NCBI GenBank assembly: GCA_019828565.1
Contig: JAHDYR010000012.1
Span: 1,054,001 to 1,118,000, forward strand
From: Carpediemonas membranifera BICM
Lineage: Eukaryota; Protista; Fornicata
Reading direction: 5' to 3'
DNA length: 64,000 nucleotides
In this document: positions 6,699-64,000 of the stretch, piece after piece
How the letters are laid out: each line of letters starts with the position of its first letter
Numbering within the stretch: position 1 is the first letter of the stretch
The notes under the pieces: model-generated
What the model saw: the letters and a program-made list of their open reading frames with translations, nothing else
What the model was told of the DNA's origin: nothing
Database searches by the model: none
Position numbers and translations under genes: made by a program

Positions 6699-7268
6699 AT
6701 GTATGTTCGCGCTGTAATCGCAGGGAGTCCAGTCGGCCAACTGATGGAGGCCTCGTGTAGCCCCGTGATAATGAACGCGATTCATCCCCATGTGAAGGTC
6801 AAACAATGTCCCCTATACATGCAAGCTCTATAAAACCGCCGGGCTGGAGAAAGGTCCCGGGGTGTCGAGTCACGAAGTCACCATGCCGCATTTTAAAAGA
6901 AAAGTAAGCAGACCACACTACAATGGCACACCAGTCAGCCCTCACCAACATTGCACACGTCTTTCACTGAGATGCAGTAAAGTCCATGTGCTTGCTTTAG
7001 ATGCGTGGGTGCCATTGTTGTAAAGCTTCCATGGTGCCACCAGCATTTGCTCCCCGTTCATGTTGGACGTGGGCGCCGCACCTATTGATACTGGGTCGAT
7101 GCCTCTGGAAACCTGGCAGTTTTATGGGACTGGATGGAGAAATGGACCCCGTCCATGGCATTGTACTCGCTGTCTGGTTGAAAAGCGAGCCAAGGTCGTG
7201 CTGACACATGATCAGATCCGAGTTACAGCAGTCTCATGTAAAGCCATTTATATACCCGCCCTCACGCC

Positions 7269-8436
7269 TCACGTCTTCATCTGGTCCCTCATGCACTGCT
7301 GGCAGGCTACAATGACCCCGGGCGAGGACATGGCCTCGATGCACCTCGAGCAGGAGACGCACTTGACGCGGGTCAGGTCGTGGTTCTGCATCATAAGCTT
7401 CACAATGTGGGGCTCGGCGATAAAAGGTCGGCACATCGCCACTGCGTCGCAGACGCCGCTGTCGATGAGACGGTCGGCACCGCTGGGTGTTCTGATGCCG
7501 CCAACTGCGATGACCGTGACGCCCAGGGGAGCGAGGGCGTCTCTGATGGCCTTGGTCTCATTCCTATGGTAGCCCTGTTTGTCTAGTGGGAAGAAGTTGC
7601 CCTTCCGGATCGCCTGGTACGCGCCGTACTTCACCCCGCCCGAGACCTCGACCGCGTCCAGCCCGGGGATGCTGCTGAGTGCATCAATGGTAGTCTGCAC
7701 AGTCGACCCGACCGGACGGCCGTCGATGTCGAAGTAGTCGGAGCCGTTGATCTTGACGGCGAGCGGGAAGTCAGGGCCCACGAGTGCCCGGGCCTTGGCG
7801 ACAATGTTGCGGAGGAATAGCGCCCTGTCCTTGCCGTACTGTGTAAGATGGGGGCGGGCGGTGACGAACTCGGTCGGGCCTCCGGTTGACAGCGGGGGAA
7901 AGCGTCGTCGATATGAGGTAGCCATGCCCGGCGTGGAACTGCACGCCGTCGTAGCCGGCAATGCGCTTGCATCTAGCTGCGGCTGCGGCAAATGCGTCTT
8001 CGAGCGCCTCGAGCTCCTCTATGGTATACTCCTCAGCCTCGATGGGCATCTTCACGGTCGCACGAAGCGTCAAGTCGTCCGGTAACGAGCAGATGGTCTT
8101 CGGGCTGTCCGTAATGGAGGCATATCCACCGTGCGTGAGCTGTGCCATGATCGCGCTGCCGTGAATGTGGCTGGCGTCGACGATCTTCTTGTGCTCGGCA
8201 GCGATCTTGTCGTTGGCAAGGCTAAGCTGAACATCTTTCACTCTTCCATTCTCAGTGACGAATGCATGAGAGGCGATGATGAGTCCAAGGCCTCCTTGGG
8301 CCAGTGTGTCGTACCAGGCGACGAGTTCCCTCGTAGCACCGCCCTTTGGCGTCGCCATCGCCTCCCACGTGGCAGAACGAATCCACCTGTTATGGAGAGT
8401 GAGCTTGTTGATTTCGATAGACTTCCACACCGACAT
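7269..8436 (-). CDS. NADH:flavin oxidoreductase / old yellow enzyme family; 2 exons (8436-7870, 7838-7269)
   Basis: NRWIRSATWE, AQLTHGG, GYDGVQFHAGHGYLIS..LSP..NRRPD, VIAVGGIR, AMCRPFIAEP and a C-terminal CVSCSRC. A 31-nt GTTCGT...CTTACACAG intron (7839-7869) joins the two ORF-track frames. Confidence 0.9.
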
Positions 8437-41172: not shown

Positions 41173-42309
41173 TCAGTCGGCATGCTCGTCCACGAAACCA
41201 AGGGGTGCCCCGGCGACGAGCTCGTCGTCCTCGGCAAAACGCGCCACCATACGGCGACCATCGGCGTCTGTCAACGTCGCTACATCGTCCTCAACGGTGA
41301 GCAACTCTGGAATGAACCCAGTCGGGAGTTTGACTGGGTTGAAGGCATTGCGGTCGATGTCCATAGCCCCAGCGGCCCAGTGCGAGTAGAAGCCGGCCAC
41401 AGCTACCCCGACAGGCGTCACCAGGAACGCCTCGGTGGATGTCAGCAGGAACTGGCGCACGAGCCGGTCTTTGTGCCAGGGGGGCAGGCCTTGCTCGTAC
41501 GCGGCCACCACAGGGCAGAAGGGGAAGGTGAGGCGGGTCGGGGCATGAAGGACCATGGCCGGCATCCCAAGCAGCTGCCTGGCGTTGCACCCCACGCCGT
41601 ACAGGCCTCGAGCAGTCACCAAGACGGTGCATACCGCTCCGGTCTCCGGGAAGCACTGCCAGTGCACCGTAAGCACCGTCGGACACGGCAGCCGGGCGTA
41701 CTTCACAGCGGGTGTCGACGAGCCGCGGGGCCGTGCGAACAGTCTGCCCTGATAGAGGCGGCGGCAGGCGAGAGCATGCACGACAGTCTCGCCGTCCTTG
41801 GAGGCGACGCAGTGGGCAAAGAAGAGCTTCTTACAGAGGAACCAGAGGCACTTGTCGGTGCTGCTGTATGCATTGTCGTCGTCCTGCGCACCATCCAGGT
41901 CCGGGTTGGCCTCACCCCCCATCATGCAAGCCCACAGCGTGCCCTGGAGCAGCGTGTGCAGGGCGACCGGGAGCTCCTCGCCATCAGCGAGCTCGACATT
42001 CATGCTGAGCGGAGGGCCGCTGGTGAGGATGGAGTGGGCGCGGTCGAGGAGCAGCTGTGCGTTTGGCTCGAGAGGCGGGAGTTCTGCGAGCCTCGCGAGG
42101 AGCTTATCGGCCGTAGCCCCAGTTGTGGCTTCATATGCTTCAGTATGATCGTGTAGCGAGGGCATCTCCTCGCGGAACTGCCTGTGGAAGGCGCCAGCGA
42201 TCAACGACGGCACGTCTCCGGGGACATCCGCCGTGGCGATCGTCGCAAGACGATGGAGACCTGCTAGAGCGTCTTTGAGCTCGGTTGCACCAGTGCTGGT
42301 CGCTGCCAT
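41173..42309 (-). CDS. RCC1-like repeat family protein, paralog A
   Basis: N-terminal ~125 aa identical to paralog B; LWFLCKKLFF, LVTARGLYGVGCNARQLLG. Confidence 0.65.
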   Translation of the reverse strand: MAATSTGATELKDALAGLHRLATIATADVPGDVPSLIAGAFHRQFREEMPSLHDHTEAYEATTGATADKLLARLAELPPLEPNAQLLLDRAHSILTSGPPLSMNVELADGEELPVALHTLLQGTLWACMMGGEANPDLDGAQDDDNAYSSTDKCLWFLCKKLFFAHCVASKDGETVVHALACRRLYQGRLFARPRGSSTPAVKYARLPCPTVLTVHWQCFPETGAVCTVLVTARGLYGVGCNARQLLGMPAMVLHAPTRLTFPFCPVVAAYEQGLPPWHKDRLVRQFLLTSTEAFLVTPVGVAVAGFYSHWAAGAMDIDRNAFNPVKLPTGFIPELLTVEDDVATLTDADGRRMVARFAEDDELVAGAPLGFVDEHAD

Positions 42310-42492
42310 TTCGCTTGGCACCACTGCAATCAGCTTGTGTTGTTGGTGCCATCGCGAGAGTCGACCCCAAGTCACAGCGAGGGTGTGGCGTGCAGCACAT
42401 GCATGTAGCCCCAGCACCACGACACTTCATTCGCGGTCCTCATTTCCCCGCAAGAGCTGAGTCTGCTGGGTCTGGTAAGGGGCGAGCTGCGG
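41930..42492 (-). repeat. 563-bp inverted duplication, arm 1
   Basis: Reverse complement of 46298-46860; I saw only one mismatch, near the gene-internal end. Confidence 0.9.
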
Positions 42493-46297: not shown

Positions 46298-46860
46298 CCG
46301 CAGCTCGCCCCTTACCAGACCCAGCAGACTCAGCTCTTGCGGGGAAATGAGGACCGCGAATGAAGTGTCGTGGTGCTGGGGCTACATGCATGTGCTGCAC
46401 GCCACACCCTCGCTGTGACTTGGGGTCGACTCTCGCGATGGCACCAACAACACAAGCTGATTGCAGTGGTGCCAAGCGAAATGGCAGCGACCAGCACTGG
46501 TGCAACCGAGCTCAAAGACGCTCTAGCAGGTCTCCATCGTCTTGCGACGATCGCCACGGCGGATGTCCCCGGAGACGTGCCGTCGTTGATCGCTGGCGCC
46601 TTCCACAGGCAGTTCCGCGAGGAGATGCCCTCGCTACACGATCATACTGAAGCATATGAAGCCACAACTGGGGCTACGGCCGATAAGCTCCTCGCGAGGC
46701 TCGCAGAACTCCCGCCTCTCGAGCCAAACGCACAGCTGCTCCTCGACCGCGCCCACTCCATCCTCACCAGCGGCCCTCCGCTCAGCATGAATGTCGAGCT
46801 CGCTGATGGCGAGGAGCTCCCGGTCGCCCTGCACACGCTGCTCCAGGGCACGCTCTGGGC
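46298..46860 (+). repeat. 563-bp inverted duplication, arm 2
   Basis: Reverse complement of 41930-42492. Confidence 0.9.
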
Positions 46861-51496: not shown

Positions 51497-52453
51497 TTAC
51501 TCAGGCTTGGCGGTGGCGCGGGCCTTCAGCTCGTCCCACTCGGCCTTGCTGATCCGCTTCCGCTTGGGCAGGTCCGCGGTCTCGATCATCTTGAGGTACG
51601 TCTCGTTGAACTGGAACTGGGGGCTCCGGTCGGCGTCGGCATAACGCATCTTAATGGCACCCTTGGGGCACGAGTGGTAGCAGGCGTAGCATCCCACGCA
51701 GCCGGGTCCACGCTCGGCGATGTGGGTGTCACCCATGCGCATGGCGCCCGTTGTGCAGGTTCTGACACACTTTCCGCACCCGATACAGCGAGAAGGGTCG
51801 ACAGTGACCTTGCTGAAGCCAAACTTCCCGCCCTTCTTGTCGTCAAAACCGACGGCAAGCATGAGCTTCGACGAAAGTGCGATCGATGGCGGCTTGACTG
51901 TCTCGCCAGCCGCCAGGCGCCGGACGAGCTCATCGGCATGTTGCTTGGGCGTTTCCAGGTCCTCCTTCGCTAATACCAGACCGCGGGTGCGAATGAGAGG
52001 CGGATAGTTGTGAGTTGACGCCCAAAAGCCATGATAAACAAACTTCCCACCGCGCTTGACCATGTGCTTGCCAGTGAGGCCGGCGCCCTCGGACGAGCTG
52101 GTCGCGGTGCAGAAGGTGAAGCAGAGATTGTCCTTGAAGTACTCGTCGAAGCGGGGCTGCTCAACGAACTCCCGGAGGCCGTGGATGAAGACGCCCATGG
52201 CGATGGCGGATCCGACGCCGACAACATCATACGAGTCGGCGGGGGCGATCTTCTTCAGACATTCTGCACGGGTGGCGGGTGTGCTGACGTTGAACTTGTC
52301 GACAACGTAGCCGGCAGCTTCTAGGGCAAGCTTGAAGCACTCGGCGTAGAATCTGCATGTCCCGGTGTAGCTGGCGTACAGAATGAGCGCGCGCTTGGAA
52401 CGCTGGTCCTGTTCGGTGCTCACGTGCTGCTGTTGCTCTTCCTCGCTGCTCAT
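51497..52453 (-). CDS. Flavodoxin-like + 2x[4Fe-4S] ferredoxin fusion (EFR1-like)
   Basis: ILYASYTGTC at the N-terminus; CIGCGKCVRTC and CVGCYACYHSCP cluster motifs. Confidence 0.85.
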   Translation of the reverse strand: MSSEEEQQQHVSTEQDQRSKRALILYASYTGTCRFYAECFKLALEAAGYVVDKFNVSTPATRAECLKKIAPADSYDVVGVGSAIAMGVFIHGLREFVEQPRFDEYFKDNLCFTFCTATSSSEGAGLTGKHMVKRGGKFVYHGFWASTHNYPPLIRTRGLVLAKEDLETPKQHADELVRRLAAGETVKPPSIALSSKLMLAVGFDDKKGGKFGFSKVTVDPSRCIGCGKCVRTCTTGAMRMGDTHIAERGPGCVGCYACYHSCPKGAIKMRYADADRSPQFQFNETYLKMIETADLPKRKRISKAEWDELKARATAKPE

Positions 52454-52530
52454 TGGAGGGCACAGGTGGTGTTTCACAAAAGTGCACATTGATTCAGAGA
52501 AGTCTGCTGTATACGATTGAGAGTTACTTT

Positions 52531-52562
52531 ACTGCTTGCACTGTGCACTCTATGATACTTCA
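52531..52562 (+). repeat. 32-bp direct repeat, left end of copy 1 (ACTGCTTGCACTGTGCACTCTATGATACTTCA)
   Basis: Identical to 54743-54774, 60416-60447 and 62630-62661. Confidence 0.95.
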
Positions 52563-53085
52563 TTACCCCTTCCCGCTCTCCCTTCCTTCTTCTTGAGAGT
52601 GATATTTCGATAGTCAGTCATCATCGTCGGGGGTCATCAATCAGTGCTTCTCCAGTCCTCTCGCCAAGCAACTAGCTTCCCACCTATCGTCTACCCCATC
52701 TTACTTCCATCCGCTCTCTTCTGCTTGTCGGATTTCGGGGTCTTGATCATGACGTCTTTGCAATCATCACCATGGCCTTCCATCGCACAGCTGGCTCTTC
52801 TATGCCGCTGCCTGAAGATAAAACACTTCAGTTCTTCTAATTCTCGCCATTATCACTGCATAGTCTCGTTCATTAAACGTCTGTCGTCTTTGATGTGTGT
52901 TGTTAACAAGTGATCGGTTCATTCACCGCAAAACGCAGAGCTTCGCATGACCAGCATCTATACGGTCAAGTTCTCCATATCCTCTCCGCATAACCGTAGA
53001 AACGTGATTCCTTTCATCGCGGACTTCTACGCCGGATTGGAGAAAATACGCCGCAGTTCGGCAGGCTGTCACCTCAATAGCCGAG

Positions 53086-54699
53086 ATGCCACTGTGGCAT
53101 GGCGAGTTCATCATCCGCCTCTGCACCGCCCTCATGGCAGCTCGTCAACAGTGCCCTCGCGAGTTCGACGTGTGGCTGGGCGAATATGCCACGAGCACCA
53201 AGCTGTGGCTCGTCAATGCCCTTGAAGGTTACTGCTGGCGCCTGGCGAAGATCATCACTCGGGTCGACACTGCCCTGACTCAGCGTGATCCAGACGTGCC
53301 CCGGGACGACATCACCCGGTTGCGCACCGAACAACGCGCTGTCAAGGCGATCGTTGATGAGCACCTTGCAAAGATCTCAACTCCGGGACGAGTCGACGAG
53401 GGCGTTCTACTCACGCTGCCCTGCGTCTGGCGGATCTCCGCGGCTCTGGGAGAGCTCACGGATATGGTTGCGGCATTCAACACCGCCCATCCACCTCTTC
53501 CGGGTGACAAGCCGCTGGCTGGCCCCAAGCTTGTTCCGCTTGTCCCGATGGCTCCGATCCGCCCCGGGTTCATGCACGTTCCCTGTTCTCTCAACGTGCT
53601 GAACCCGGCTTGGCTTGCCCCACTTGGGGTCGACCCGGAGCATCACACCACTGAGCGCATGACCCGAGAGCAGCTGGAGGCTCTTCCTCCGAACATCCGT
53701 CGGGTGCTGTCTGTCAAGACAGATGGGGTCGCCGTGGACCTCACGGTCCAAGTTGGTGCTCTGCCATACGTCAGCAGACGTGCCAGTGGCAACCCGACGA
53801 TGAAGCGAAAGGCTCGGGAGCGTCTGGGTGTGGATGACGCAGATGCTCGCCCCGCGCCAGACCCCGATGCCCACCTCATGGGTTTCGACCCGGGTGCTCG
53901 GGCTCTGGGTGGATTCTTCATCCGCCACCAAGATGGCACCACCAGCTCCGGTGTGGTCCCGAAGTGTGGGTACACCAAGACCCCCAGCTTCGCGTTCGAT
54001 ATGACTCCTGCGTCATTCAAAAGTACAAATCTAAATAGTCTACAAAACTCGATTAGGTTTGTGCTCCTCCACGAGCAGGAAATATTCGACGCTGGGATGG
54101 TCAAGAGCTTCCGCAGAGTGCGCCTGACGAACCACATCTTGCGTCAAAAGCACTTCCACAGAGCTGGGGAGCAGCTTGCTCGCACCCTAGGATGGACTCC
54201 TCGGCGACTCCCTCGCGGTATTGCTCCTCCCCGGGCAGCCCCCACCAGGCTGGTTGTCTTCTACGGAAGCGCTAGATTCAAGACGCCCCGTCGGGTGCAT
54301 CCATGCGCGCCGTATGGTCGCTTTGCAAAATCACTAGCACACATCATGAGAACTTTCAACATCACTGCTGAAGTGCGGATGACTAACGAGTTCCGAACCT
54401 CACTCGTCTGACCCTTCTGCCGCGCGAGGTTCCGTAGAACTCGCTACACGAGGCGCACGATGCGATGCCACAACCCGAATTGTCAAGGTGCTCCATGGTA
54501 CAGACAGCAACGCCTCAATTCCGATCCTACTACATCCACTTGGCTCAATCTCTCCCACAGAGACAAGACTGCTGCACAGAACATCTTGGATTGCGGCCTC
54601 ATGACGGATGCACAGTATAACAAGCCAGTGCTTTCAGAAATCCAGCCCGTCTTCCCAACTATAACCCCAATACACCAATTACGGCTAACCAGCCGCTAG
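53086..54699 (+). pseudogene. Fanzor-like nuclease with a nonsense mutation
   Basis: TGA at 54409-54411 replaces the TGC (first Zn-finger Cys) of copy 2 and removes the Zn finger and RuvC-III; the downstream frame is still intact. Confidence 0.85.
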
Positions 54700-54794
54700 T
54701 CTTCGCCTCCGGGCAAGCTAATTAATTGAAGTGGAGAGACGCACTGCTTGCACTGTGCACTCTATGATACTTCATTCAGAGAGAGATTCGACGT
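54682..54794 (+). ncRNA. Putative omegaRNA 3' scaffold plus flank-derived guide, copy 1
   Basis: Hairpins at the element right end, which is the position expected for TnpB/Fanzor omegaRNA; boundaries are inferred. Confidence 0.45.
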
Positions 54795-59586: not shown

Positions 59587-60339
59587 TCACTCGACGAGCT
59601 CCATAATGTATATCTTGACTGTCCTGCGGATCTCGATGTCGCCGGGGTCCTCCTCGAACATGACGGGCATCCTCACCGGGTCCAGCTCGGTCACGGCAAA
59701 GCAGCACTCTCCGTTGGACACCACAGTACGGTCCACAGCAAGGTCGAAGAAAGCAAGGTCCTTGTGCTGAAGCCAGGGCCGATGGGACGAGAATGCCACC
59801 CGGACAACACCGCCAGGGGCAAGGCACTCGCGGCAGGTCCGCAGGAGAGCGCCGTGCTGCGAGTGGTTGAACAGCAGGTCAGAGAGGATTATGACGTCGA
59901 ACAGGCCATCCGCCAGCAGAGGCGCTGTGTCTGAGCCCCACGCAAAGCCGGCCACGTGAACGTCACAGGCAGTGTCCTTCGTGTTCCGGTTAATGTTGGT
60001 CTGCAGGCGCTCGATCAGCTCCTCGTCGGGGTAGTCTGTGGCGTACACCGCGGCAGCTCCGTTCAAGCAGGAGGCAATCGAGGCCAAGCCGGCGCCAGAA
60101 CCGAGTTCAAGGACGCGCTTGCCCCGGACGTCGATTATTCCCTCGTCCATCTGATTCAAGATGACGCGGGAGGCGTTCCACAGCACGTGGCCCCACAGAG
60201 AGTGCTCTGGGGCAAGATCCAACACAATTTTCTCCCCATTGCCCCTCTCAACCATAGTTTGGGACGCCGCTTTGCGTTCCTTAAAGTATCCGTCTGGTTC
60301 TTGGAATAAGTCCACGGCAATTTCCTCGGAATCGCTCAT
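59587..60339 (-). CDS. EFM7/NNT1-like protein methyltransferase (family 16)
   Basis: DLFQEPDGYF, HSLWGHVLWNA, VLELGSGAGL, TDYPD, SDLLFNHSQH, FSSHRPWL, MFEEDPGD. Confidence 0.9.
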   Translation of the reverse strand: MSDSEEIAVDLFQEPDGYFKERKAASQTMVERGNGEKIVLDLAPEHSLWGHVLWNASRVILNQMDEGIIDVRGKRVLELGSGAGLASIASCLNGAAAVYATDYPDEELIERLQTNINRNTKDTACDVHVAGFAWGSDTAPLLADGLFDVIILSDLLFNHSQHGALLRTCRECLAPGGVVRVAFSSHRPWLQHKDLAFFDLAVDRTVVSNGECCFAVTELDPVRMPVMFEEDPGDIEIRRTVKIYIMELVE

Positions 60340-60383
60340 TCGTTCGACGGAGACCGGTGTACTATTCTGCTCGCCGTCGCATT

Positions 60384-62661
60384 GAAGTCTGCTGTATGCG
60401 ATTGAGAGTTACTTTACTGCTTGCACTGTGCACTCTATGATACTTCATTACCCCTTCCCGCTCTCCCTTCCTTCTTCTTGAGAGTGATATTTCGATAGTC
60501 AGTCATCATCGTCGGGGGTCATCAATCAGTGCTTCTCCAGTCCTCTCGCCAAGCAACTAGCTTCCCACCTATCGTCTACCCCATCTTACTTCCATCCGCT
60601 CTCTTCTGCTTGTCGGATTTCGGGGTCTTGATCATGACGTCTTTGCAATCATCACCATGGCACCTTCCATCGCACAGCGGGCTCTTCTATGCCGCTGCCT
60701 GAAGATAAAACATTTCAGTTCTTCTAATTCTCGCCATTATCACTGCATAGTCTCGTTCATTAAACGTCTGTCGTCTTTGATGTGTGTTGTTAACAAGTGA
60801 ACGGTTCATTCACCGCAAAACGCAGAGCTTCGCATGACCAGCATCTATACGGTCAAGTTCTCCATATCCTCTCCGCATAACCGTAGAAACGTGATTCCTT
60901 TCATCGCGGACTTCTACGCCGGATTGGAGAAAATACGCCGCAGTTCGGCAGGCTGTCACCTCAATAGCCGAGATGCCACTGTGGCATGGCGAGTTCATCA
61001 TCCGCCTCTGCACCGCCCTCATGGCAGCTCGTCAACAGTGCCCTCGCGAGTTCGACGTGTGGCTGGGCGAATATGCCACGAGCACCAAGCTGTGGCTCGT
61101 CAATGCCCTTGAAGGTTACTGCTGGCGCCTGGCGAAGATCATCACTCGGGTCGACACTGCCCTGACTCAGCGTGATCCAGACGTGCCCCGGGACGACATC
61201 ACCCGGTTGCGCACCGAACAACGCGCTGTCAAGGCGATCGTTGATGAGCACCTTGCAAAGATCTCAACTCCGGGACGAGTCGACGAGGGCGTTCTACTCA
61301 CGCTGCCCTGCGTCTGGCGGATCTCCGCGGCTCTGGGAGAGCTCACGGATATGGTTGCGGCATTCAACACCGCCCATCCACCTCTTCCGGGTGACAAGCC
61401 GCTGGCTGGCCCCAAGCTTGTTCCGCTTGTCCCGATGGCTCCGATCCGCCCCGGGTTCATGCACGTTCCCTGTTCTCTCAACGTGCTGAACCCGGCTTGG
61501 CTTGCCCCACTTGGGGTCGACCCGGAGCATCACACCACTGAGCGCATGACCCGAGAGCAGCTGGAGGCTCTTCCTCCGAACATCCGTCGGGTGCTGTCTG
61601 TCAAGACAGATGGGGTCGCCGTGGACCTCACGGTCCAAGTTGGTGCTCTGCCATACGTCAGCAGACGTGCCAGTGGCAACCCGACGATGAAGCGAAAGGC
61701 TCGGGAGCGTCTGGGTGTGGATGACGCAGATGCTCGCCCCGCGCCAGACCCCGATGCCCACCTCATGGGTTTCGACCCGGGTGCTCGGGCTCTGGGTGGA
61801 TTCTTCATCCGCCACCCAGATGGCACCACCAGCTCCGGTGTGGTCCCGAAGTGTGGGTACACCAAGACCCCCAGCTTCGCGTTCGATATGACTCCTGCGT
61901 CATTCAAAAGTACAAATCTAAATAGTCTACAAAACTCGATTAGGTTTGTGCTCCTCCACGAGCAGGAAATATTCGACGCTGGGATGGTCAAGAGCTTCCG
62001 CAGAGTGCGCCTGACGAACCACATCTTGCGTCAAAAGCACTTCCACAGAGCTGGGGAGCAGCTTGCTCGCACCCTAGGATGGACTCCTCGGCGACTCCCT
62101 CGCGGTATTGCTCCTCCCCGGGCAGCCCCCACCAGGCTGGTTGTCTTCTACAGAAGCGCTAGATTCAAGACGCCCCGTCGGGTGCATCCATGCGCGCCGT
62201 ATGGTCGCTTTGCAAAATCACTAGCACACATCATGAGAACTTTCAACATCACTGCTGAAGTGCGGATGACTAACGAGTTCCGAACCTCACTCGTCTGCCC
62301 CTTCTGCCGCGCGAGGTTCCGTAGAACTCGCTACACGAGGCGCACGATGCGATGCCACAACCCGAATTGTCAAGGTGCTCCATGGTACAGACAGCAACGC
62401 CTCAATTCCGATCCTACTACATCCACTTGGCTCAATCTCTCCCATAGAGACAAGACTGCTGCACAGAACATCTTGGATTGCAGCCTCATGACGGATGCAC
62501 AGTATAACAAGCCAGTGCTTTCAGAAATCCAGCCCGTCTTCCCAACTATAACCCCAATACACCAATTACGGCTAACCAGCCGCTAGTCTTCGCCTCCGGG
62601 CAAGCTAATTAATTGAAGTGGAGAGACGCACTGCTTGCACTGTGCACTCTATGATACTTCA
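60384..62661 (+). mobile_element. Non-autonomous Fanzor/TnpB-carrying element, copy 2
   Basis: TSD CGCATT at 60378-60383 and 62662-62667; same termini and 32-bp end repeats as copy 1. Confidence 0.92.
60973..62586 (+). CDS. Fanzor (eukaryotic TnpB-family) RuvC nuclease, open frame
   Basis: SVKTDGVAV; RuvC-I HLMGFDPG (D268); RuvC-II TNEFRTS (E435); Zn finger CPFC...CHNPNC; RuvC-III HRDKTAAQNI (D493). Confidence 0.9.
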   Translation: MPLWHGEFIIRLCTALMAARQQCPREFDVWLGEYATSTKLWLVNALEGYCWRLAKIITRVDTALTQRDPDVPRDDITRLRTEQRAVKAIVDEHLAKISTPGRVDEGVLLTLPCVWRISAALGELTDMVAAFNTAHPPLPGDKPLAGPKLVPLVPMAPIRPGFMHVPCSLNVLNPAWLAPLGVDPEHHTTERMTREQLEALPPNIRRVLSVKTDGVAVDLTVQVGALPYVSRRASGNPTMKRKARERLGVDDADARPAPDPDAHLMGFDPGARALGGFFIRHPDGTTSSGVVPKCGYTKTPSFAFDMTPASFKSTNLNSLQNSIRFVLLHEQEIFDAGMVKSFRRVRLTNHILRQKHFHRAGEQLARTLGWTPRRLPRGIAPPRAAPTRLVVFYRSARFKTPRRVHPCAPYGRFAKSLAHIMRTFNITAEVRMTNEFRTSLVCPFCRARFRRTRYTRRTMRCHNPNCQGAPWYRQQRLNSDPTTSTWLNLSHRDKTAAQNILDCSLMTDAQYNKPVLSEIQPVFPTITPIHQLRLTSR

Positions 62662-62681
62662 CGCATTCGATCCGTTTATCC
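62569..62681 (+). ncRNA. Putative omegaRNA 3' scaffold plus flank-derived guide, copy 2
   Basis: CGGCT-AACC-AGCCG, TAG..GCC-TCCG-GGC..CTA and TGAAGT...ACTTCA stems are conserved between copies, followed by a variable flank. Confidence 0.45.
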
Positions 62682-62705: not shown

Positions 62706-63479
62706 TCATTGCCGCATAGCTGCGACGCTGTCCTCCAGCAGCCTGAACAGCGTCTCTTCCGTGCTCTTCCGGTCGCGCCGCTCCTGGGCAATTTCCGTCT
62801 GTGTGCGGGTCGCCACGTCCTCCAGCATATTGAACATGGTCTGCTCGGTCTCCTCCCGCACTTTCCTCTCCGTCGCCAGGGTTTCATTCAGCGCGGCGAC
62901 CTCGTCCTCGAGCTTCTTTGCCATGCGGGTATACCGCTCCGACCGATCGTGGTGCTCCATCTCCAGCAGCTCATTCAGCCGCGCGATCTCAGCTGCCACC
63001 TTCTCGTCAACCTCAGCACCCTCCTGCTCCCGAGCCTTCCTGTCGTTGGCAAACTCAAGGCGAAGGGCGAAGCATCGATCATCAATGGTTTTGACGAGCT
63101 TCGCCTCGGCGTCTTTGCGTGTCGACTTCTCGGTCCCGAGGTCGTAGACGACGGTGGACTCGACTTGGCGCAGATTCTTCCCCATGCGCTCGTCCTGCGC
63201 CTCTCGCTCCGATCGAGCAGTGGCAATGGACTGCTGCAACCGAGTGAGGCTGTCTTTCATGTCGTTCATCTTGGTCTCTTCAGCAGCGGCGGACTTGGCG
63301 AGCTTCTCCTCCAGGACACGCAGCTTCACCTCGATGAGCTGGGATCGCGCCTGCTTCTCGTCCTCTAGGCCAGCTTGGAGCGAGCCAAGCTTGTCAGCAA
63401 TCTGTCTCATGCGCATACGGCTGTTCTCAGTGAGTGCTTGCGGTTCTCCCACCGGCATTTGGTGACGAGACTCGTCCAT
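62706..63479 (-). CDS. SF-assemblin / beta-giardin family striated-fibre protein
   Basis: Short Pro-containing head plus a long coiled coil with repeated ERKVREETE/ERRDRKSTEE segments. Confidence 0.8.
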   Translation of the reverse strand: MDESRHQMPVGEPQALTENSRMRMRQIADKLGSLQAGLEDEKQARSQLIEVKLRVLEEKLAKSAAAEETKMNDMKDSLTRLQQSIATARSEREAQDERMGKNLRQVESTVVYDLGTEKSTRKDAEAKLVKTIDDRCFALRLEFANDRKAREQEGAEVDEKVAAEIARLNELLEMEHHDRSERYTRMAKKLEDEVAALNETLATERKVREETEQTMFNMLEDVATRTQTEIAQERRDRKSTEETLFRLLEDSVAAMRQ

Positions 63480-64000
63480 TGTTCTGTCACCAAGGTCAGG
63501 GTCAACCCCAGGTGGGAATGGCGGGACTGCTACGGCCCGGTATGTACTGTGGATGTTGGCCAACAGTGGCATTGCAGCGTGGTCGCCTTGCCTCACTGTC
63601 AAAGAGAATACGATCTCACTGCCGACTTAAAAGATGGGTTATAAACGAGGGGAGGAGGCAGACAGCGCAGTATCAAGTGATTAACTGGCCCTTCCTACAA
63701 CTACGTGGCACAAATGCCGCCTGGCGTTATTCTGCGAATTTTCGGGGCAGGCTTCCACACATGGGCTCTGGCCGGGGATCCGCTCCAACATCACCAAAGA
63801 AGATTGGAAGTGCGCATGGAACTCCTAGAAAGGGAGTTGGCAGTGCGCACAATACGCCTAAGACATCTGTGTTCTCATCTGCAGATATGAAGTATAGGCC
63901 GCACGAGATCGACACACTGTTCAACGCGAAATGCCGAGACCTTGGCATTAAGAGCCTTGGTCCTCAGCTTGAGCGTTTTAGATACTATATGTTTGCTCAC

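Follow-up and report, generated by a model that had tools for sequence, protein, structure and literature searches.

A predicted Fanzor1 nuclease on an apparently LTR-derived carrier in the protist Carpediemonas membranifera

The main finding of this study is that the genome of Carpediemonas membranifera harbors three families of mobile elements in which a Fanzor1-like gene with conserved catalytic residues lies between ends that carry a polypurine tract (PPT), appear to be derived from an LTR and follow the target rule of a resident Ty3/gypsy element. As far as the sequences allow us to judge, what is new here is a Fanzor1 on an LTR-derived carrier, with a replication route that we infer and a nuclease activity that is predicted. 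To the full explanation, in which a non-autonomous element with Fanzor1 as its sole gene, placed antisense in a shell derived from a Ty3/gypsy chromovirus, is moved by a Ty3 helper in trans and spreads by allelic homing, we give slightly better than an even chance. The analysis started from one stretch of 64,000 nucleotides (contig JAHDYR010000012.1, positions 1,054,001 to 1,118,000), referred to as the window, for which a sequence-only reading had already proposed two copies of a Fanzor-bearing element in a metamonad-like host. The host assignment is borne out by protein matches that name C. membranifera. The derivation of the carrier from an LTR and the insertion rule common to the resident Ty3 element go beyond that reading.

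Results

Two broken copies of a family-1 element lie in the window

The element copies and their target duplications are located as follows, in window coordinates.

52498..54774, plus strand: element copy A, family 1
52493-52497 and 54775-54779: target duplication of copy A, TTCAG
60383..62661, plus strand: element copy B, family 1, TG...CA, 2279 bp
60378..60382, plus strand: left 5-bp target duplication of copy B, CGCAT
62662..62666, plus strand: right 5-bp target duplication of copy B, CGCAT
60834..60929, plus strand: remnant of the true N-terminal coding region, ending at a 206-bp deletion

Copies A and B occupy different insertion sites; apart from their first base, they are distinguished by 9 internal substitutions and one 2-nt indel, so that the earlier description of two near-identical copies with their own sites stands. 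Their interpretation as recent independent insertions holds for the sites; local gene conversion or local hopping may account for part of their near identity, as sister copies cluster on the same contig. The 6-bp target duplication assigned to each copy, however, has to be corrected. Family-1 elements begin with TG, one base before the start noted earlier, and their duplication is 5 bp long, perfect in 18 of 20 genuine sites. A 6-bp duplication as the rule of the family is ruled out, since the sixth base matches at only 8 of these 20 sites, and its match in copy B is a matter of chance. The first base of copy A is A and not T, the terminal T having been replaced by a target base, and hence its duplication reads 6 bp. 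At the three listed family-1 sites without the TG start, copy A among them, the first base is identical to the sixth base of the right flank; these sites therefore look like rare 6-bp events in which one terminal base was lost.

Both window copies are broken derivatives. A TGA stop (54409-54411) replaces the first zinc-finger Cys in copy A, and copy B has Arg at 62152, where the other copies and the other families have Gly. Both copies lack 206 bp after 60929 when referred to copy L006, and as a result of this deletion the N-terminus of the family, MTSIYTVKF (60834), is out of frame. Only three copies share the deletion junction, and all of them lie on this contig within 73 kb. All these comparisons concern natural copies rather than a consensus or repaired element. 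The only long ORF inside the element is the Fanzor-like one and no transposase gene was found in it, which supports the previous suggestion of a non-autonomous element moved in trans.

The protein has the hallmarks of Fanzor1

The single long ORF with TDG, GFDPG, NEFRTS, HRDK and CxxC..CxxxxC motifs that had been described before was confirmed at 60973-62586, with the following layout.

60973..62586, plus strand: Fanzor1-like ORF, N-terminally truncated, 537 aa
61606, plus strand: TDG, residues T212-G214
61774, plus strand: D268 (FDPG)
62275, plus strand: E435 (NEFRTS)
62296-62370: zinc finger CxxC..CxxxxC, C442-C466
62449, plus strand: D493 (HRDK)

The RuvC-I DPG and the D-E-D triad are present and conserved across the three families, which share 44-48% identity; the triad D268/E435/D493 and the zinc finger are intact in all three, and the TDG (T212-G214) is invariant. 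The RuvC-II glutamate is rearranged, as E435 stands just before C442, where the zinc finger starts. A TDG in the WED domain has been used as a Fanzor1 criterion (PMC10711439), and so has a rearranged RuvC-II glutamate that precedes the zinc finger by about six residues (PMC13565253). The window copies themselves lack the complete start of WED. In the ESM Atlas, both the window protein and a family-3 protein reach a feature score of 0.98 against giant-virus clusters with Cas12f1-like TNB and DUF8286, and the Atlas model of the full-length family-3 protein aligns with giant-virus TNB/DUF8286 clusters at TM 0.59-0.64 over residues 9-635. With the motifs invariant in three families and these Atlas matches, the Fanzor1-like assignment of the sequence-only reading is strengthened, and we consider the protein almost certainly a Fanzor1. 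Our own two AlphaFold2 models, built on shallow alignments, had pLDDT of 35-38, too poor for a structure search. Searches of Pfam, NCBIfam and PDB sequences yielded sub-threshold matches in the zinc-finger region only (Cas12f1-like TNB, E 0.11; Cas12f, E 0.14-0.5), and protein sequence searches returned only Carpediemonas proteins or unnamed fragments from the same three families, with no homolog outside this genome. By its family membership the protein is probably an RNA-guided nuclease, in guidance as in cleavage.

The protein is not as compact as its 537 aa had suggested: the ORF is a fragment left by the 206-bp deletion, and copy L006 has 116 more in-frame codons from MTSIYTVKF and thus a protein of about 653 aa. 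In family 3, one copy retains an uninterrupted ORF of 642 aa, in agreement with the mean Fanzor size of 620 aa (PMC10530073). A spliced N-terminal exon is ruled out, as the gap is a deletion without GT-AG ends and the longer copies read through this interval in frame. Comparison between families gives a pN of about 0.3 and a pS of about 0.7, with synonymous sites saturated, and the Fanzor gene was therefore under purifying selection.

The element ends resemble those of an LTR retrotransposon

The ends of copy B, with a 32-bp direct repeat and a purine tract that had not been part of the earlier reading, are organized as follows.

60383..60447, minus strand: left unit, 65 bp, read as a miniature 3' LTR, TG...CA, 6-bp inverted tips
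60416..60447, plus strand: 32-bp core, directly repeated at the right end
60448..60479, minus strand: polypurine tract abutting the left unit, 90% purine over its first 20 nt
62569..62661, plus strand: candidate omegaRNA scaffold (predicted)
62630..62661, plus strand: right 32-bp core, equal to the start of U3 on the minus strand, with no PBS behind it

Read on the minus strand, the left end consists of a polypurine tract, TG, a short LTR and CA, that is, a PPT with a miniature 3' LTR, while of U3 the right end retains just the first ~32 nt, to which the candidate omegaRNA is joined. One and the same end plan, in family-specific sequence, is found in all three families: the tips are TG...CA throughout, the PPT lies directly before the 3'-LTR-like unit, and the terminal 22-32 nt of the right end are found again, in direct orientation, at the inner side of the left unit, followed by a pyrimidine run. 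The inverted tips measure 6 bp in family 1 and 3-4 bp in families 2 and 3; extended TIRs are absent, and the carrier is not a TIR transposon. The left unit also occurs solo with clean 5-bp duplications. Its outer part is variable in family 1, where two main tips occur besides several junction variants; in family 3 the left units range from 73 to 325 bp with a fixed core-side junction. Some mismatches between the left and right cores recur in several insertions, such as L033, L040 and L045 in family 3. Two identical LTRs are lacking, only 22-32 nt being common to both ends, and a search behind the 5' end for a PBS revealed neither TGG nor a copy of the post-LTR sequence of the resident Ty3. The element is therefore not a standard LTR element or TRIM.

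For the right end, RNA folding in the Fanzor sense predicts in all three families two hairpins, the first with GCUAA, and a long stem that closes on the terminal bases; compared with shuffles, the fold energy gives a z of -6 to -7 in family 2 and about -1 in family 1. The guide of this candidate omegaRNA would derive from the right flank. Contigs of a probable RNA run, from one sample that is not recorded as RNA, end at the edges of neighboring genes, extend over the full length of the element and reach a much greater depth over 62320-62601 than in the middle of the ORF, a difference that is only suggestive because such contigs sum all copies and carry no strand or ends.

Insertion sites keep a constant spacing to a promoter-proximal motif

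The following host features surround the two copies.

60363..60370, plus strand: host target motif TATTCTGC (pattern in the family, WAWNCTGC), separated by 7 nt from the duplication that follows
59587..60339, minus strand: host lysine-methyltransferase-like gene, its promoter region hit by copy B, head to head, 44 nt from tip to ATG
51497..52453, minus strand: host flavodoxin/4Fe-4S gene, its promoter region hit by copy A, head to head, 45 nt
62706-63572, minus strand: SF-assemblin/beta-giardin gene, ending 45 nt from the right end of the element

At family-1 sites TGC stands at -10 to -8 from the duplication in 19 of 20 cases (background of TGC 0.02) and A at -14 in all 20, so that at 19 of 20 sites the spacing between the insertion and the promoter-proximal motif is 7 nt. 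A host ORF reading away from the left tip starts within 68 nt at 15 of 18 family-1 sites. The same motif is used from its other side by families 2 and 3, at spacings of 8 and 7 nt, respectively. The motif is over-represented upstream of genes in the window, with 11 occurrences seen against 3.2 in shuffles. No base bias was detected at -6 to -1, in the duplication or in the right flank, the sole signal lying at -15 to -8. With no bias adjoining the insertion site, no ordinary TAM can be read from the target, in a comparison that tests the insertion site and not the enzyme.

The right ends of families 1-3 contain the target motif 6-10 nt from the tip, in mirror orientation to the host motif of the left flank, and this right-end motif may replace the promoter element for the gene beyond. 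Insertion of one element into another is explained by the presence of the target motif in their own ends: nested elements at the expected spacing were seen at L011, L015, L023 and L035, with family 3 in a family-1 right end, and family 1 and Ty3 in a family-3 right end. At L034:~7200-7310 one host motif has a family-1 solo unit 7 nt away on one side and a family-2 element 8 nt away on the other. The family-2 elements L031, L039, L043 and L046 lie between the motif and a host ATG that follows a few bases past the right end; from this placement their guides would match host 5' ends.

The U5 tip and the target rule are shared with a resident Ty3/gypsy chromovirus

The genome contains at least 150 reverse transcriptase (RT) and 150 integrase matches in Ty3/gypsy order. 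Locus L023 represents the 3' end of one such element, with the end of a chromodomain ORF (Pfam Chromo, E 0.002), an adjoining rve match, a PPT and a 96-bp LTR, and this LTR occurs in pairs about 4.2 kb apart. The last 9 nt of its U5 tip are common to the family-1 tip, in an alignment that beats 998 of 1000 shuffles, and the Ty3 PPT-TG junction resembles the junctions of the Fanzor families. TGC is found 12 nt from the tip at 5 of 8 Ty3 3' LTRs, as compared with 19 of 20 family-1 sites (background 0.02). A single unit joining the 14-nt tip of Ty3 to the family-1 core was found, at C1:1024710-1024780. All 8 Ty3 5' LTRs are followed by one fixed sequence, which was never found behind a family-1 unit. 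Since the two ends of the Fanzor element differ and this Ty3 PBS-region sequence never follows the family-1 unit, standard LTR replication is excluded. As to the autonomous partner that the earlier reading suggested looking for, no helper with the exact family-1 LTR was found in the sequences read, nor one combining a family-1 LTR with the Ty3 post-LTR sequence. At L007:700-1150 we observed the 5' LTR and gag start of the 96-bp-LTR Ty3, where the post-LTR sequence does not begin with TGG; priming may therefore not use a tRNA 3' end. Among the rve matches are several groups of identical integrase ORFs of 630-655 aa, which are either pol tails or integrase-only genes.

Copies are numerous, decayed and locally clustered

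The genome-wide search for copy number proposed in the sequence-only reading recovered, at the DNA level, at least 75 pieces, which come from roughly 40 family-1 loci. The terminal core is present at least 122 times, and our reading of core sites covered all but about 45 of these 122. The C-terminal half of the protein has at least 135 matches, which fall into the three families at about 95%, 58% and 54% identity. Frameshifts are present in 25 of 29 family-1 copies, although some frameshifts or indels may be long-read assembly errors in repeats. Among the changes between family-1 copies 49 of 159 are synonymous, compared with 44 expected; no selection was detected among these copies and the changes are neutral. 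The nearest relative lies on the same contig for 9 of 29 copies, against 1.0 expected (p 5e-5). Sister bodies nevertheless bear different tips (L001/L002 vs L003, L016 vs L018, L004 vs L007). Shared deletion derivatives occur on different contigs, and short derivatives without the ORF have moved to unlinked sites.

Four unlinked derivatives (C7:157091, C13:1009543, C39:733204 and C63:302396) consist of the last 375 bp plus a short left part and are ghost-like, ORF-less candidate omegaRNA carriers. In three pairs of loci (L030 vs L002, L029 vs L030, L046 vs L047), copies that lie on different contigs or are inverted relative to each other have short flanks of 246-270 bp in common or exchanged, which suggests ectopic recombination or mixing in the assembly.

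Discussion

Insertion was very probably carried out by a Ty3-type integrase. A Ty3 helper would supply this integrase and reverse transcriptase in trans. The PBS-less element RNA would take minus-strand strong-stop DNA, the U5 tip, from the helper RNA, the plus strand would be primed at the element's own PPT, and the 32-nt repeat would stand in for a PBS in the second strand transfer. Such an RNA step in the movement of the element, to which the retained PPT and the swapped tips point indirectly, appears fairly probable to us, and borrowed strong-stop DNA would explain the variable tips on near-identical bodies. Guided by an RNA that runs from the right end into the flank, Fanzor would cut the empty allele, and repair would copy the insertion. 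Allelic homing of this kind would explain why an element that does not excise keeps its nuclease, and we regard present-day homing by the nuclease as evenly balanced between yes and no. Several observations weigh against the explanation. The persistent core mismatches do so because perfect end-copying would erase them, and the clustering of relatives on the same contig is more like local hopping or gene conversion than retrotransposition; either gene conversion after insertion or a DNA-level route could explain both. The missing TAM bias next to the insertion site counts against homing, which would need a TAM. The non-identical ends, the negative search for a helper with the exact family-1 LTR and the neutral decay of the copies are further points on this side. 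That the element is a PBS-free Fanzor retro-chassis, in which the same 32 nt form the 3' strand of the omegaRNA, recognition is TAM-less or depends on a distal motif, and insertion into empty alleles proceeds without excision, we propose only as a tentative and rather doubtful extension.

An unlikely alternative, to which we nevertheless give some weight, is that the ends are derived from a Ty3 LTR while movement is now cut-and-paste at the DNA level, by an integrase-like DDE transposase of the Ginger/IS3 kind acting in trans, with Fanzor restoring the element by homing at the excision site. This would agree with the role known for Fanzors (PMC13565253), with the local clustering of sister copies, and with ends that lack a PBS and are not homogenized; the several identical rve ORFs of 630-655 aa could be integrase-only genes serving it. 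Against it, the PPT has been kept next to TG in all three families despite saturated synonymous sites, tips are swapped between sister bodies, the inverted tips are just 3-6 bp long and the target rule matches that of a true paired-LTR element. Moreover, excision is not known for retroviral-type integrases.

Two further alternatives touch on the role of Fanzor and on the origin of the copies. It is improbable, in our view, that the element spreads as in the explanation we favor while Fanzor no longer homes, being either a passenger that was captured once, acted under selection in the past and is now decaying, or an RNA-guided promoter binder, the latter conceivable because each guide matches a promoter or 5' UTR. 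Neutral decay with frameshifts in 25 of 29 family-1 copies, the lack of TAM-like bias, the movement of ORF-less derivatives and guides that are promoter-proximal by construction would all fit, but the catalytic triad and zinc finger are intact in three families, one family-3 copy retains an unbroken 642-aa ORF, and some of the frameshifts may be long-read assembly errors in repeats. More improbable still, and to be taken as very unlikely, is that copies were made or homogenized mostly by recombination, with Ty3 integrase inserting solo units only and Fanzor cassettes being break-repaired into existing solo LTRs through the 32-bp core. Solo units with the same target rule are indeed common, tips are discordant with bodies, and the flank sharing of L030/L002 (246 bp) and L029/L030 shows ectopic exchange; yet PPT retention would go unexplained, 32 bp is little homology, and full elements with clean duplications sit at unrelated sites on many contigs.

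The element can be compared with several known systems. With SpuFz1 and SfAV Fanzor1 (Saito 2023, PMC10432273; Yoon 2023, PMC10711439) it shares the TDG in WED, the DPG of RuvC-I, the glutamate before the zinc finger, a size of about 640-650 aa, a non-autonomous carrier and ORF-less 'ghost' derivatives. The Fanzor1 RNA has three stems that include the element terminus (PMC10711439), a layout that is only predicted here. Fanzor1 carriers have TIRs, in contrast to the direct-repeat, LTR-like ends and PPT seen here; the 5-bp duplication here is variable and without an adjacent consensus, so no TAM is readable, and the protein differs from known Fanzor1 in having no sequence-level homolog outside this genome. 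A 2026 review describes LTR-type carriers as unseen for Fanzors, and earlier associations of Fanzor with Gypsy elements were of proximity only or were interpreted as later insertions. Our literature search found no paper with both Carpediemonas and Fanzor, and the name is absent from the searchable Fanzor supplements, in line with the sequence-only reading, which knew of no characterized Fanzor from this lineage.

The resident Ty3 chromovirus (96-bp LTR, L023/L007) has in common with the Fanzor element the PPT-TG junction, the U5 tip, the 5-bp duplication, a promoter-like motif near LTR nt 27-28 and insertion at a distance of 7 nt from the motif, towards which U5 points; it differs by its two identical LTRs, the fixed sequence behind the 5' LTR and gag-pol, none of which the Fanzor element has. 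TRIM and LARD elements are small, helper-dependent, non-autonomous LTR elements with solo repeats, and both Tf1 and Ty3 target promoters. The Fanzor element resembles TRIMs and LARDs in size, helper dependence and solo repeats, with promoter-adjacent insertion as in Tf1 and Ty3. TRIMs, however, have retained identical terminal repeats along with a PBS and are without a nuclease. Ginger and IS3-like transposons (PMC2836005) likewise have TG...CA tips, and a gypsy-like integrase generates their duplications of 4-6 bp, but their long TIRs and the lack of a PPT or solo direct repeats set them apart from our element.

If the RNA step is confirmed, restorative homing cannot be the sole reason why Fanzors persist. 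Since no consensus adjoins the target, these enzymes are also candidates for a relaxed or unusual use of the TAM, a property of relevance to editing tools.

A minor observation concerns a 563-bp perfect inverted repeat elsewhere in the window (41930-42492 and 46298-46860). It was ruled out as a helper transposon or TIR element, as it corresponds to a promoter and 5' coding part common to two RCC1-like paralogs, which are divergently oriented and flank three other ORFs. The repeat looks like a recent inverted duplication or conversion.
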